From positions 4,091,360-4,155,359 of the forward strand of contig NC_043019.1 in assembly GCF_006345805.1 (NCBI RefSeq): a stretch of DNA of 64,000 nt, in the 5' to 3' direction. Origin of the DNA: Octopus sinensis. Lineage: Eukaryota. The position numbers were made by a program, and so were the translations under genes. The notes under the pieces are model-generated. The model had not been told where the DNA came from and made no database searches. It was given only the letters and a program-made list of their open reading frames with translations. This document shows, in pieces, positions 16,365 to 64,000 of the stretch; position 1 is the first letter of the stretch, and each line of letters begins with the position of its first letter.

Positions 16365-16879
16365 TACTAGAAGAATAATAACTTTCTCAAGCTGTTGTGC
16401 GAGACTCGTTCGGGAAAAGATGTAAAATTAATTAATAACATAAAGGCCCAAAATTTCAAAACTATCAAGGATATTGACCTAATACCTGATATTTTCCCAT
16501 CATATAGGTACAGGAGCTAGTCTGAATTTTTTCAGGGAGATCTGAGGGAGTGACCTCTGACCCTCTGGGTGATTTGACAGCGTCTTTGTTTCTGGGCTGA
16601 CCAAAGCCTTGTGAGGCGATTTGGTTGATGGAAACTGAAAGAAATCTGTTGTATATGTACATATACCTATGTGTCTGTATCTTTGTGTCTCTGTTTCCCA
16701 ACAACACTTGAAAACTAGTGTTGGTGTGTTTATGTCCCTGTAACTTAGCCGTTGGATTCGGCTTGGTTGCTACGGCTGGATGCTCTTCCTAACGCCAACA
16801 CTTTACAGTGTGTGCTGGGTGCCTTTAATGTGGCACTGGCCCAGGGTCCTTCCAGGCCACTCCTTTTGAATAGGGGAGG

Positions 16880-17290
16880 CAATATCAATACTTCTGCTGT
16901 GGAGTATGGATCTTCTTGTGTATGGCAAAGCACCAGATGGTTTGATCCTTTGTCATCATTTCCACGAGGTTTAGTGTCCCGAGGCCATCCTTCAGTATTT
17001 CGTCCCATGTCTTCCTAAATCTTCCTCTTCCATGAGTTCCATCCACTTTCAATTATTGGCACTTCTTTATGGAACTGTTAACATCTATCCTCATCACATG
17101 ACCAAACCAGTGCAGTCTTCTCTCCTGCACACGGCATCTAATGTCTCTTAAGCCATTTTTTTCTCAGCACACTAGCACACTGTTGCACATGTACACTTAC
17201 ATTGCACATGCAGCAGAGCATACTAACCTCATTCCTCTCTAACCTCTGAATGCAGAGGACATATAAAGAAATACATAAATATGTATATAT
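16880..17290 (-). mobile_element. RTE-clade LINE 3' fragment
   Basis: LERNEVSMLCCMCNVSVH...QERRLHWFGHVMRMD...GRGR.RKTW; duplicated at ~50190-50600. Confidence 0.8.
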
Positions 17291-17573
17291 GTTCATACAT
17301 ATGGATGTGTGCATGCATGTATGAATATATGTATAGAATGTTAATAAAATATAGAAAACAGGGAATTTCATGCTTTATAAAGCATACACGTATTTTGGAA
17401 AATTACTGCTAGTATTACGTAATTGCCTTTAGAAACATTATATAATCTCGTAAACACTTCTTCAGCATTTAGCAAAATATACAAAGAATGGTGCTAAATG
17501 CTCAATATTCCTGTTAAGCATATTATCTACATCAGTGGGATGACAAAATCTACACACCATCGTCATATCATAC

Positions 17574-17729
17574 CTGGTAAATCTGTCAAGGATACACCAT
17601 ATGCTATATTCATAAAAGCTTGTTCTTCTTCATTGCCAATAACAGGGAGTTTTGTAGACATGCTTGGAAAAACTGTCTTGAATCTCTAGGGTGACATAGC
17701 ATCAGTATATTTGAGGCTTTTAATGTTAT
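17574..17729 (-). CDS. STAND-TPR paralog B, exon 3, with 1-bp deletion near 17638
   Basis: AG at 17730-31, GT at 17572-73; ITLKASNILMLCHPRDSRQFFQACLQNSLL then frameshift relative to the 157-bp copy A exon. Confidence 0.8.
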
Positions 17730-19188
17730 CTAAAAATCAAACACAGTAACATGTGTTAATATTTTGTCTGTAGAAATAATGTGGTGAGCTGGCAGAACCA
17801 TTAGCACACTAAACAGAATGCTTGGTGTCATTTTGTCTGTCTTCATGTTCTGAGTTCAAATCAATTTTCCTCTTCCCAGAAATTGCTGACCTTGTGCCAA
17901 AATATGAAATCAATGTTTTTTCTGAAAAATATTAATGATTTCAAATCTTTACTGCCCCAAAGAGTAATAATAATAATAATAATATTCCTTTCCACTAAAG
18001 GCTTGAAATTTCGGGGAAGGAGCTTGATCGATTACATCGACCCAGTGTTTCACTGGTACTTAATTTATTGACCCTGAAAGGATGAAAAGCAAAGTTGACC
18101 GCAGTGGAATTTGAACTCAGAATGTAAAGACGGATGAAATGTCGCAATGCATTTTGTCCAGCATGCTAACGATTCTGACAGCTTACTCCTTTATAAAATT
18201 AATTATAATAATAACTAGCAGGACCCATGAATACTTCACAGAATTAATAGTAAACCTATTGGGTTATTCCTGAAAACTTTATCCCAAAAGCCTGAAAGTG
18301 TATCCTGTGTTGTGTCTGAGGATAGTCACTCATCTACTATTCACTGAAAAGTGAAGGAAATTGGAATACAATGATTACTTAATGCACTTTATATAATATA
18401 TATATATATATATGTGTGTGTGTGTGTATATGTATGTATATATATATATATATATATATATATATACAATTTTATAGACTCACTACACAGCAGTCATAAA
18501 ATAAATATTCACTCATATTTTCCCATTTCCCCCATAAAGAAGAAAAGTTACGTTTTAAAATTTACATGGTTACCATTTCATATCTAGAAATTTTAAAGTA
18601 AAAAAAATTATATGTAAAATAGTAAAATAGTTATACCATACTACTCTCTAAGGTTGTCTTTCGGTTAGTCCCTGCTTCAATGGAATTGGTGATTCCACCA
18701 CTATACAACTATTAATATTGCTGCTGTTACTACAACAAGTATAACAACAACTACTCCTACAGCTGTTGCTACTACTACTACTACTACTACTACTACTAAT
18801 AATACTAATACTACTGCCACACACCATAGTTTGGTGCCTTACTAGCGATGATAAGTACAATGTAATACAGTGGATTGTGTATCTTGGATCATACTGAGTC
18901 TCGGATCAACTAACCAAATGATGTCTGATACGTGATATACTGAGTCAGACTCAGATCTGAACAGACAGAAAGTAGGATAGACTGAAACTGTCAAAGAGGC
19001 TGAGTTTGATGAACTAGAGTGAGTCTGACCTAATATATTCTGAGTGACACTTAGTCCAAGGTAGCTGGAGTGCAGATTAAGATGTAACAGAAAAAACCCC
19101 AAATAAGATGTAATAAAAGACAGAATAAGATGTAACCAAAAAGAATTTGTAAGAAGGGGCAGAAGAGACCCTATGCCGAGCTTACAGC

Positions 19189-19443
19189 AGGGTTTCTCAA
19201 CCGTTTTTTACCTATCGACCCCTTTGATTGCTATTCCACTCTATTGGACCATCCTAGACATTCGATGTTTAAAAGAATCACATATTTTTGTAATTAAATA
19301 TTATAAATAATTGTATTAAAAAATTATTGAAATATTTTGTGTATTGTCGAAGTATAACCAATTTCTTGCTGATATATTTTAACAACAGCAAACTCTTATA
19401 TGGACCCCCATGGGCCATATGGCCCTCAATTGAGAACCAATGG
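19189..19443. mobile_element. hAT/Charlie-like MITE remnant
   Basis: CAGGGTTTCTCAACC...TTGAGAACCA ends resemble Charlie-type TIRs. Confidence 0.5.
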
Positions 19444-61260: not shown

Positions 61261-61330
61261 CCCCGAACCTATATGTCTTCACTGTCTGTTTTGCAGCTGT
61301 CTTCCTCTTTGTTTTTCTATAAATTTGAAC

Positions 61331-61460
61331 TATATATATATATATATATATATATATATATATATATATATATATATATATATATATATATATATATATA
61401 TATATATATATATATATATATATATATATATATATATATATATATATATATATATATATA
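61331..61460. repeat. (TA)n microsatellite
   Basis: Direct reading. Confidence 0.97.
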
Positions 61461-61959
61461 CACTTAGATGGTCGTGGTCTCGCGTGGTGAAACTGTCTAA
61501 TAACGACTCTATTCAGAAAGCTGAAATCTTGATATATAAAATTGGGAATGTGTGTCTGTCTGTCTGAGTTCAAATTCCGCCGAGGTCGACTTTGCCTTTC
61601 ATGCTTTCGGGGTCGGTAAGATGAATTAAATACCAGTTGCGCACTGTGATCGATCTAATCGACTGGCCCCCTTCCCCAAAAATTTCGGGCCTTGTTCCAA
61701 GAGTAGAAAAGATCATTTATTATTCTATTAATGTGTACGTAATTAATTATCTATTGAATGAAAATTAAAAAAAAAATAGCTGTACAGTTTTTGAACGCGG
61801 GATAGCTGTGAGACGAGAGAGAAAGTTGGGTGATTACTATTAGAAGATAAGGAGAAAGAAGTTACCGACATGTACTTGAAACTTGCATCGTATTCTCAGT
61901 TTCCAAACACTTTGTACCACTAAGCCAACATTGACACACTCGCGACACACGTGCGACTT

Positions 61960-62340
61960 CAACAGTGACACACTCGCGCACACACATTGATATACATACA
62001 AACAAATGAAAGGCAATGAATGAATGTGTGGGAGTTGATCTCCAATGTTGGACGCAGGCAGAGCATCAATCGAGTCCCCCGAGAATTTTGCACCAGCAGA
62101 GAGTAGGCGATCCCTTGAAAATTGATCAGATTGATTAAGGAGTGAGAGTTGAAAGTGGCACCTGAATGCAGATTGTCCCACACTCTCTGTTTCTGTCTAT
62201 CCTCCCCTCTAACCGGAACTGACAAACCCAGCTCTCTCCCCACTGTGGTAGAGCTTCATCCATCTCCCTGTTGGAGTTAGTCCATGTTGGAGGAGAGAGG
62301 ATGTTGCCTACCAGAGGGGGGTAGGCGTGGTTGGAATATG
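61960..62340 (-). mobile_element. Inverted copy of the CRE-like fragment
   Basis: Reverse complement of ~60890-61140; also at 26640-26940. Confidence 0.7.
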
Positions 62341-64000
62341 GTGTTTTGTGTGTACAACATGGTCGCGGTCCAATGACTGAAACAAATAAAAGATATTTAA
62401 AATAATAATCACCTGCTCCTGATGTTGATGTCCTTTAAACTCCCTTCAATCCCGAACAAGCAGACCCATAGGTTCAAATAGACGTCTTAGCTGTGATATC
62501 ATGGGGCAACAAAATCGGGGGCGTATACATCTGTAGTAAGGCCCTTTTATTTATACGACTTTTCCGTTTCATGTTTATTTCATTCATTGTTTGCAAATTT
62601 CTCCCTCCCCCACTCTCTCTCTCTCTCTCTCTCTCTCTTTCTCTCTCTCTCGCTCTCTCTCTCTCTCCCTCTCTCTCTCTCTCACACACACGCTCACTGC
62701 AAGGCTTACAAAATGGCTATTGAACTGACATTTCTATGCTATTTTGAGGGGAAGTGTACAGCATGGCCACAGCGACTGAAACAAATAAAAGATATTTAAA
62801 ATAATAATCACCTGCTCCTGACGTTGATGTCCTTTAAACTCCCTTCAATCCTGAACAAGCAGACCCATATGTTCAAATAGACGTCTTAGCTGTGACCACC
62901 ACCTCTTATTTTAAAACACTGTGTATCTATGGCTATATAATCCAATGTGCCTAGATAAGTTATCTTCTCCAATTTTTAACGACAACAGCGGTTGATAAAA
63001 ATGTGGAAAAACCGAATTTTTCTCCCTCATTTCTTCACTAAAACTATAAACTGAATGAATATCGAGGTAGATAATTTCCCCCTCTCATTTACAGTCTAAT
63101 TACTTTATCGACTCAAGTGTTCTATATAATTTGTTAGTCACATGCTGTTGAGTCGTTGCCCTTTATTCTCTCTATCTCGCTCCATTCCCTCTGTTTATTT
63201 TCATACCCCTCTCTCTCTCTCTCTCTCTCTCTCTCTCTCTCTCTCTTTCTCTCTCTCTCTCTTTCATCTGACATGATTCCCCTCACCACAGTCAAGGGCA
63301 CTCTATCCACATCTATCTATCTGTCTATCACTTTCTGCGCATATCTTTCCTTTATCTCTCTAGTGTTTATAGTGTTGCTTAGCAAGTGCTATCAGACAGA
63401 CTATGTGACATTTCAAATGCTGTATGCACGGATCTCAAACGCCTACCTCCTTCATCTCTTCCAGGTAGAGAAACCTGTCGACATCACAATTTCTGTGGAG
63501 ATTTCTGGTTGACATCCAGAACCTTGCGGGTGTTAATGTCTATGCAGTGGATTTCTTCTACAGACCAGTCAAGCGTCCCAAATGTCGGAATTGTTCCACG
63601 AATTTATGTATTCAATGGAGGTACTCGAAGTTTTTTAAGAGATAGTTTTTCATGAGAACATACAGAACACTTTTGACGCCCACCTATTTTTTGTGCTAAA
63701 CCCAAAACATCTACTGATGATGACTAACTTCTCTCTTGCCATTCCACTTATTGTTCTCTCCATAAGGGAACCATGATTAATGTATTTCTCTCGTGACCTG
63801 TTTTTGACAAGTATTCATTCGTTTGTGAATGACTGTATATCCTTTTCTGAATTTTCCCTGAAACACATATGCAGTCATAACTTCACAAGCACCTGTATCA
63901 TTCGATTTTTAACTCTCTCACTAGAAGGTGAGAGTTGTAGGAACTGATTTTCTCTTCCTGGTTGAGAATCGAAGTTCCAATCTAAAACTTCTCTCTTGCC

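Follow-up and report, generated by a model that had tools for sequence, protein, structure and literature searches.

A stretch of 64,000 nucleotides from Octopus sinensis (hereafter the window) carries two head-to-tail copies, A and B, of a gene unit encoding a predicted NB-ARC-type STAND ATPase with a TPR sensor. Positions 1-5543 of the window were 100% identical to positions 56613-62155 of locus L001 on O. sinensis chromosome CM016881.1, and the window lies at ~4.091-4.155 Mb. The interpretation that we favor, with a probability of roughly 0.75, is that A and B are neighboring units, on the same strand, of an old tandem array whose period is ~33-34 kb and which is formed by a cephalopod-lineage NB-ARC-TPR family; that B is intact, whereas A is cut by a gap in the assembly; and that the 5' halves of the family members were partly reshuffled, mostly before the split between O. 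sinensis and Octopus vulgaris.

The coordinates and identities of the A/B blocks were obtained by self-BLASTN of the window. Copy A (16365-28956) was collinear with copy B (49660-63662) on the same strand, as follows.
16365-28956, minus strand, copy A unit, with exons 1-3, a partial intron 3, and 6.8 kb of upstream sequence
49660-63662, minus strand, copy B unit, the part homologous to A
16365-18186 = 49660-51479, A/B block, 94.5% identity
19299-19504 = 53704-53897, A/B block, 84.5% identity
19534-21431 = 53898-55782, A/B block, 94.2% identity
21566-22773 = 55691-56899, A/B block, 95.3% identity
26679-26858 = 62038-62218, A/B block, 86% identity
26891-27103 = 62288-62496, A/B block, 92% identity
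26978-27475 = 62770-63263, A/B block, 85.9% identity
28678-28956 = 63385-63662, A/B block, 94.3% identity
21315-21663, (CCTA)n microsatellite in intron 1 of A; its counterpart in B (~55653-55800) is shorter

The core blocks were 94-95% identical, and the upstream blocks, which extend to 28956 = 63662, were weaker. Exon 1 of A and exon 1 of B, both on the minus strand, were spaced 34,123 bp apart head to tail, and the A/B offsets ranged from 33,295 to 35,792 bp. A first-pass annotation, made from the sequence alone, had described a tandem segmental duplication with a period of ~33-36 kb; the period was right (offsets of 33.3-35.8 kb), and the duplication is a head-to-tail, same-strand duplication of the STAND-TPR gene unit. 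That annotation had also matched 16365-22770 with 49660-56900 and 24000-29000 with 59480-63650. Collinear blocks are present in both ranges, but the match is interrupted by unrelated repeat, transposable element (TE), or satellite sequence, at 18187-19298 of A versus 51480-53703 of B and at 22774-26678 of A versus 56900-62037 of B; 23919-24221 and 59386-59685 were just 76.5% identical. Homology to B thus covers ~6.3 kb of the ~12.6 kb of A. The drift of the A/B offset results from the unrelated inserts and from the length difference of the (CCTA)n tract in intron 1. The tandem repeat formed by A and B is real.

Gene B is LOC115223560, a complete gene of 10 exons whose product comprises an NB-ARC-like STAND ATPase followed by a TPR array and a short tail with Cys residues. 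The spliced coding sequence rebuilt from the window translated exactly to P0001 (the 857-aa isoform X2), and all introns were GT-AG.
32682-56300, minus strand, gene B (LOC115223560 isoform X2), 10 exons, 857 aa
56300-56121, minus strand, B exon 1
54939-53914, minus strand, B exon 2
51027-50871, minus strand, B exon 3
48938-48791, minus strand, B exon 4
46941-46832, minus strand, B exon 5
45308-45195, minus strand, B exon 6
42807-42664, minus strand, B exon 7
42199-42088, minus strand, B exon 8
40337-40073, minus strand, B exon 9
32999-32682, minus strand, B exon 10
40073-48938, minus strand, B exons 4-9, TPR array (TPR_12, kinesin-light-chain-like) by tblastn mapping, without a counterpart in copy A
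33240-33557, minus strand, alternative final exon used in isoform X1 of gene B; its amino-acid sequence is 78% identical to that of exon 10

The two last exons of gene B (33240-33557 and 32682-32999) are tandemly duplicated alternatives, and the O. vulgaris model P0007 takes the upstream one.

Copy A is less complete. A gap of 100 Ns, unnoticed in the first-pass annotation, adjoins its first base.
16265-16364, no strand, scaffold gap of 100 Ns; A-B homology reaches base 16365
21998-22177, minus strand, A exon 1, 60 codons, Walker A GLPYVGKTS, three amino-acid differences from B
19550-20575, minus strand, A exon 2, 342 codons, intact open reading frame (ORF) with Walker B, a GLPL-like motif, the winged helix, and the arm
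17574-17729, minus strand, A exon 3, 1-bp deletion (TTT to TT near 17637)

The splice sites of exons 1 and 2 were canonical in both copies. The deletion in exon 3 of A falls in a T run and leads to a premature stop eight codons downstream. The contig carrying A starts inside intron 3, beside the gap, and homology to B runs to the last base before the Ns. When 19 family proteins were used in TBLASTN, no exons 4-10 (TPR) were found left of the gap. Copy A is therefore not a complete gene in the window, and the second STAND-TPR paralog of the first-pass annotation was reduced to exons 1-3, with exon 3 frameshifted and the sequence ending at the gap. RefSeq annotates A as the 5' end of LOC115223659, residues 1-402 of whose isoform X1 (P0028, 601 aa) correspond to A exons 1 and 2; these are spliced to exons 3-5 of a distant copy ~200 kb away. 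The model spans 213 kb (~3.90-4.11 Mb in the record), with LOC118767588 and LOC115223655 nested inside it in antisense, and it is probably a gap-caused chimera.

Each protein of the family would comprise an NB-ARC-type STAND ATPase (nucleotide-binding domain [NBD], helical domain, winged helix, and arm), a TPR_12 array, and a C-terminal tail of ~100 residues with conserved Cys. In Pfam, P0001 scored 54.7 bits for TPR_12 (cut-off 30.1) and 30.0 bits for TPR_2 (cut-off 27); kinesin light chain TPR domains in the PDB were matched at 2e-15, and the modeled TPR region had a predicted local distance difference test score (pLDDT) of ~90. At the N-terminus, Pfam gave only sub-threshold P-loop matches (ATPase_2, AAA_16, and NB-ARC). 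These weak matches came only from exon 1 and the full-length protein, and exon 2 alone had no Pfam match. Therefore, the family was assigned through distant relatives, a PDB profile search, and fold comparison. When the 454-aa N-terminal part was searched exhaustively with HMMER against 1.84 billion clusters, only 55 representatives had an E-value of at most 0.001. The relatives that were traced to a source belonged to Argonauta, cuttlefish, bivalves, a gastropod, and a hemichordate, and several of them pass the NB-ARC cut-off; P0050 (31.4 bits) and P0062 (37.2 bits), which do so, match P0012 at 6e-18 and 1e-11, respectively.

The N-terminal domain profile, searched against the PDB, matched the NB-ARC domains of plant NLRs (MLA13 at 2e-8 and Roq1 at 1e-7, and also ADR1, NRC2, and Sr35), and no NACHT protein was found in the Pfam or PDB profile search. 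The AlphaFold2 model of the N-terminal domain had a pLDDT of 83 and a predicted template modeling (TM) score of 0.79. Its best Foldseek matches were CED-4 (E = 8.5e-8, TM 0.50-0.59), Apaf-1 (query-normalized TM 0.49), and NRC3, NRC4, and Sr35 (0.44-0.50), consistent with an arrangement of NBD, helical domain 1, and winged-helix domain like that of CED-4, Apaf-1, and plant resistosome subunits; NOD2 ranked only 46th, with a TM of 0.28. A full-length AlphaFold2 model was set aside in favor of the N-terminal-domain model, as its nucleotide-binding oligomerization domain (NOD) and arm had a pLDDT of 68 and its Foldseek matches were mostly TPR proteins. The Walker A motif (GxxxxGK[ST]) is present as GLPYVGKTS at residues 48-56 and is conserved in octopus, Argonauta, and Sepia-like relatives; the Walker B motif (hhhhDD) reads CIFDDF, with D114 and D115 invariant; and the GLPL motif of helical domain 1 reads CGLPGLL, with L203, P204, G205, and L207 conserved. 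No N-terminal effector domain was present, and C-terminal leucine-rich repeats (LRRs) were absent, with only TPR families detected by Pfam. Judged from sequence and models, the proteins are NB-ARC-type STAND ATPases with a TPR sensor, NLR-like in architecture but not NACHT-LRR NLRs. The NLR label of the first-pass annotation therefore holds in a loose, architectural sense only: the ATPase is NB-ARC-like rather than NACHT, the sensor is TPR rather than LRR, and the effector domain is missing. The analysis found no evidence for or against the immune role that this annotation had inferred. By analogy with other STAND proteins, a ligand at the TPR sensor would induce nucleotide exchange and then oligomerization. 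Full-text paper searches returned no description of an octopus NB-ARC/TPR family or of its LOC identifiers.

The O. vulgaris assembly (GCA_951406725.2, OX597836.1) provided an independent test of the A/B pair. Locus L005 (P0007) of this species was collinear with window positions 63624-30541 at ~98% identity and spans all of B and its flanks. Locus L003 (P0011), which overlaps L005, continues over window positions 30274-19398, which comprise the upstream region and exons 1-2 of A, including TE content unique to A. The O. vulgaris pair is adjacent and on the same strand, in the same B-then-A order, and its exon 1-exon 1 distance is 33.1 kb compared with 34.1 kb in the window. Over the 2644 ungapped columns common to eight copies, the divergence was 1.4% for A-P0011, 1.6% for B-P0007, and 1.5% for LOC118767588-P0006, and that of A-B was 4.0%, 2.7 times that of the O. 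sinensis/O. vulgaris orthologs. The corresponding nucleotide differences in exon 2 were 13, 4, 18, and 39. Furthermore, orthologous pairs grouped together in the tree of every segment. Taken on sequence divergence, the A/B split predates the split between O. sinensis and O. vulgaris, and A and B are no young pair. Locus L004 (P0009) was rejected as the O. vulgaris ortholog of B in favor of L005, since its exon 2 was 98.5% identical to that of B but the remainder only 84-94%. Exon 1 of the true ortholog (L005 8549-8727) aligned as 179 bp rather than 180 bp, a possible frameshift that may explain the shorter P0007 model.

NLR genes commonly evolve by birth-and-death in tandem clusters with gene conversion. 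Between exon 2 of A and that of B (342 codons, no gaps), we counted 24 amino-acid differences and 11 purely synonymous codons, exactly as claimed by the first-pass annotation. Its estimate of a nonsynonymous to synonymous rate ratio (dN/dS) near 0.8 was too high; the Nei-Gojobori method gave 0.52 (12 synonymous and 27 nonsynonymous differences, dS = 0.064, dN = 0.033), or 0.49 with exon 1 included. The family-wide mean was 0.43 (range 0.27-0.78). As the A/B value of ~0.5 is near this average, it points to moderate constraint, with no sign of positive selection. The three quoted patches (ASKMHV/ASMIRV, LIRAITKQ/LVRVLSMQ, and HHHLSFD/HHNFSFN) were all present, and the A-B differences were clustered, with 12 of the 39 within 100 bp (permutation p = 0.010). 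The long identical tracts between patches, considered as a sign of conversion, were of ordinary length (longest 124 bp, p = 0.23).
19766-19868, minus strand, densest divergence patch in A (ASKMHV ... LIRAITKQ), ancestral type
54130-54232, minus strand, counterpart of this patch in B (ASMIRV ... LVRVLSMQ), derived type

This patch adjoins the MHD-like FQVQEL motif and contains 13 changed codons, five of them synonymous. The type found in A is common to Octopus bimaculoides and close to that of Argonauta, and the derived type found in B is common to LOC115223561 and several O. vulgaris paralogs.

Evidence for exchange among paralogs came from four-gamete and PHI-like (pairwise homoplasy index) permutation tests of nine exon 2 sequences. 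The four-gamete test was failed by 474 of the 1128 pairs of informative sites, and the incompatibility was spatially structured (PHI-like p = 0.01). In sliding windows, the nearest paralog of A in intron 1 was B (2.0-2.3%, compared with 8.3-10.7% for LOC118767588), whereas in the 3' part of exon 2 it was LOC118767588 (0.7-1.3%, compared with 7-7.7% for B). The exon 3/intron 3 region of A was ~96% identical to B and to the B ortholog L005; L003 matched A only from 17294 onward, at 91.5%, and over 16365-17293 only B and L005 matched A. Because A joins the B lineage downstream of exon 2, a recombination breakpoint would lie in intron 2. Identity among paralogs was 90-94% for the NOD half but 66-82% for the TPR half; in non-coding sequence, identity to other paralogs was ~95% over the 5' half and dropped to 78-94% over the 3' half. 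These results suggest that the 5' halves of family members were partly homogenized and reshuffled by gene conversion or unequal crossing-over. Such a mosaic, with the nearest paralog switching by segment, agrees with the gene conversion proposed in the first-pass annotation, and two old sequence types so combined would account for the patches that it noted. Since orthologous pairs cluster in every segment tree, most of the exchange would predate the species split; the A/B patches thus appear to reflect two old sequence types shuffled among paralogs, mostly before that split.

Several results weigh against the interpretation given above. P0001 scored below the Pfam NB-ARC cut-off (18.2 versus 23.5 bits). 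The sensor-1/RNBS-B arginine (hhhTTR) is absent, the octopod proteins reading ILILSGG(K/E)P, and the MHD-type histidine is replaced by Gln in FQVQEL(I/V)R. RefSeq skips exon 3 of A, which is frameshifted, and A could therefore be a genuine pseudogene fragment. Left of the gap, the sequence bears no relation to the family introns, and the next family gene is on the opposite strand, so that an inversion or a scaffold misjoin left of copy A is possible. In addition, the four-gamete and PHI-like tests were positive, but approximately unbiased (AU) tests of tree incongruence were not significant for single segments (p = 0.085 and 0.117). As regards the motifs, both replacements in P0001 (TTR to LSGG within residues 140-149, and MHD His to Gln within 319-326) are family-wide, and distant relatives are canonical: P0074 and P0095 keep TTR at sensor-1, and P0074 reads FQIH at the MHD position. 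A bolder proposal can be built on these changes, namely that the array encodes cephalopod-lineage cytosolic NB-ARC-TPR receptors without a recognizable effector, in which the family-wide loss of the sensor-1 Arg and the MHD His has produced a constitutively "loose" or hydrolysis-independent switch, and in which the TPR half diversifies while gene conversion keeps the NOD half similar. We regard this as speculative and unlikely; if true, octopuses would have in this family a candidate system for innate immunity or non-self sensing.

The state of copy A admits two other explanations. It could be a genuine partial duplicate, a 5' fragment decaying as a pseudogene in the O. sinensis genome rather than a gene cut by the assembly. 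The premature stop in exon 3 and the missing exons 4-10 would fit, as would the other partial copies of the cluster (LOC115223564, of 164 aa, and exons 4-10 alone at L001 41312-52236) and the fact that RefSeq must join A exons 1-2 to exons ~200 kb distant. However, homology to B persists right up to the Ns, exon 1 and exon 2 are both intact, and the missing base of exon 3, which lies in a T run, could be an artifact of the long-read consensus. In O. vulgaris, the gene corresponding to A is complete, with all exons, and A exon 2 has a dN/dS of 0.37 relative to this ortholog; therefore, it was probably the assembly gap, not biology, that removed the 3' exons of A, and a genuine fragment seems rather improbable. 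A scaffolding error, in which the contig left of the gap (window 1-16264, bearing LOC118767588 on the opposite strand) was put in the wrong place or orientation and the rest of gene A is the true neighbor of A exon 3, is a more substantial possibility, although it falls short of being probable. The genes flanking the A/B contig are on the plus strand and A and B on the minus strand, with 100-N gaps at window 16265 and L002 1225, and four of the five mapped O. vulgaris family genes (P0007, P0011, P0006, and the next gene) run head to tail on one strand with a ~33-kb period, only P0009 being reversed. That reversed member, however, shows that O. vulgaris also has at least one, and no O. sinensis sequence matching the missing 3' half at the ortholog level was found. 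L009, the 3' part of LOC115223659, was tried as the missing half and rejected, since it is gap-cut, 93-97% identical to other paralogs, and without an ortholog-level match to L003. Thus, we continue to read A as the neighboring paralog of the intact gene B, with its 3' exons probably lost at the scaffold gap.

The origin of the pair and of its patches was weighed in the same way. The first-pass annotation had named as its refuting scenario that B is an uncollapsed divergent haplotype, and a false duplication, with either A or B an alternative haplotype placed in tandem by the assembler, draws some support from the start of copy A exactly at a scaffold gap, from the fragmentation of the O. sinensis assembly here, with several partial copies beside 100-N gaps, and from two unplaced contigs that resemble near-duplicates of each other. 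In contrast, a single contig stretch without interruption (16365-64000) carries both A and B, which differ by 4-6% as well as by kb-scale TE content. Moreover, O. vulgaris holds both copies in the same order and spacing, each 1.4-1.6% diverged from the corresponding O. sinensis copy, whereas A and B differ from each other by 4.0%, and a pair older than the species split is no uncollapsed haplotype; this scenario was therefore excluded, and false duplication in either form is extremely improbable. As for the patches, they could have arisen without exchange between paralogs, through positive selection acting locally or through multi-nucleotide mutation, in the part of the winged helix beside the MHD-like motif. 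In the densest patch, eight of the 13 changed codons, flanking FQVQEL, are nonsynonymous, and no donor of the derived type (ASMIRV/LVRVLSMQ) was sampled beyond the paralogs of O. sinensis and O. vulgaris. Yet synonymous changes cluster in the same patch (codons 296, 301, 303, 305, and 321), the overall dN/dS is 0.3-0.7, and the derived block is common to paralogs that differ elsewhere (e.g., LOC115223561), which gives the four-gamete failures and the significant PHI-like result. We therefore consider selection or mutation without exchange an unlikely source of the patches and retain the shuffling of old sequence types among paralogs.

The cluster extends beyond the window, as the first-pass annotation had supposed. 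O. sinensis family loci were found on the same chromosome from ~3.886 Mb, where the 3' part of LOC115223659 lies, to LOC115223561 at 4.260 Mb, so that the cluster is at least 375 kb long. LOC115223564, LOC115223655, LOC118767588, A, and B lie between these ends in mixed orientations, and several copies are gap-cut. In O. vulgaris, the family proteins with listed accessions are within CAI9739660-72, and the mapped units were spaced at 33.1 kb and ~2 x 33.8 kb, a period of ~33 kb. More family copies were present on unplaced O. sinensis contigs. Two such contigs of ~20 kb, L006 (VCDQ01009826.1) and L007 (VCDQ01004551.1), were 97.6% identical over 13 kb, with identical exon 2; each holds exons 1-3 of a family member, its annotated product is partial and ends with exon 3, and the break after exon 3 is at the same point as the cut in copy A. 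They are either haplotigs or very recent copies. Further 100-N gaps in the O. sinensis cluster are at L002 1225-1324 and L009 7731-7830. In L001, the partial copy of exons 4-10 lies downstream of a complete gene, and the annotated LOC118767588 range takes in both. The sequence immediately left of the gap in the window (13497-16264) recurs at L002 719-3183 and L004 5378-7808, upstream of plus-strand family genes; it resembles part of the array intergenic unit, yet faces a minus-strand copy across the gap.

The window has a G+C content of 37.5% and is rich in satellites and TEs. A Ty3/gypsy-type long terminal repeat (LTR) retrotransposon occupies 2821-8704; the two LTRs, at 2821-3401 and 8106-8704, share 97% identity and have TG...CA termini, the element is flanked by AAAAA on either side, and its ORFs encode protease-reverse transcriptase-RNase H (4295-6232) and integrase (6157-7536). 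The element is apparently young. A unit of ~180 bp resembling a short interspersed element (SINE) recurs many times on both strands at 80-93% identity, in some places as two or three tandem copies.
921-1162, SINE-like unit copies
10679-11280, SINE-like unit copies
15784-15995, SINE-like unit copies
23703-23905, SINE-like unit copies
44563-44978, SINE-like unit copies
60238-60469, SINE-like unit copies

Large simple-sequence and minisatellite arrays were found at 27426-28517, 29497-30337, 34603-35034, 37561-38290, 9067-9416, and 11280-11721; among them are (TTTC)n, (TGTA)n, 12 copies of a 36-bp unit with 99% identity, an AT-rich repeat with a 78-bp unit, (AC)n, and (TAA)n. Long spurious ORFs arise in several of these arrays.

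Overall, this is an ordinary, though undescribed, NLR-like gene cluster, whose main value is for octopus genome annotation and as a candidate receptor family. A block of octopus genes annotated as "uncharacterized protein" gains a domain-level identity, a predicted NB-ARC-like STAND ATPase with TPRs, and a tandem array with a ~33-kb period conserved between O. sinensis and O. vulgaris. The results also expose problems of the O. sinensis reference at this locus, where a scaffold gap truncates a family copy and the 213-kb LOC115223659 is probably chimeric. For comparative immunology, the cluster offers candidate receptors from a clade in which knowledge of intracellular sensors is sparse; in evolutionary terms, it follows textbook-style birth-and-death with old sequence exchange and introduces no new principle.

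One close comparison is with the NB-ARC (AP-ATPase) proteins Apaf-1, CED-4, and plant NLRs. Like them, the octopus proteins have Walker A, Walker B (DD), and a GLPL-like motif in a predicted order of NBD, helical domain, and winged helix; the domain has its best Foldseek matches in CED-4, Apaf-1, NRC proteins, and Sr35, and its profile matches plant NLR NB-ARC. Unlike them, the octopus proteins lack a CARD, TIR, or coiled-coil effector, have a TPR sensor rather than WD40 or LRR, read LSGG for TTR at sensor-1 and Gln for the MHD His, and score under the Pfam NB-ARC cut-off. In the Apaf-1-like expansions of invertebrates (cnidarians, sea urchin, and amphioxus), WD40 was described as "replaced by TPR repeats" (PMC2246300), and the C-terminal repeats of coral NLR-like proteins include TPR (PMC11359984). 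The octopus family resembles these invertebrate proteins in its NB-ARC and TPR architecture and in its lineage-specific expansion. Those proteins, however, usually carry death-fold or TIR N-terminal domains, which the octopus family lacks, and the octopus family, unlike those expansions, has just 55 representatives among the 1.84 billion clusters searched.

NB-ARC is also paired with TPR in fungi (PMC4986451). The layout of NOD, arm, and TPR sensor is common to the octopus proteins and to prokaryotic and fungal STAND-TPR proteins (Pyrococcus PH0952, PDB 6mfv; MalT; and fungal NB-ARC-TPR NLRs), and the archaeal 6mfv was among the top Foldseek matches for both AlphaFold2 models. The global TM-scores were nevertheless low (0.23-0.33), sequence similarity outside the TPRs was negligible, and the octopus gene differs in being an animal gene with introns in a tandem array. 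Compared with the metazoan NACHT and LRR NLRs, the octopus proteins would likewise be cytosolic STAND receptors by architecture and form clustered multigene families, but they have neither NACHT nor LRRs; by the definition in PMC3879445, octopus NB-ARC-TPR proteins are not NLRs. At the level of the cluster, the likeness is to plant R-gene and vertebrate NLR clusters, in the head-to-tail array with a regular unit, the partial or pseudogene copies, the mosaic paralogs, and a sensor half more diverged than the NOD half. Unlike those clusters, the octopus array showed no positive selection in the NOD exon, and its orthologous pairs are cleanly retained in two species, suggesting that sequence exchange was episodic rather than ongoing concerted evolution.

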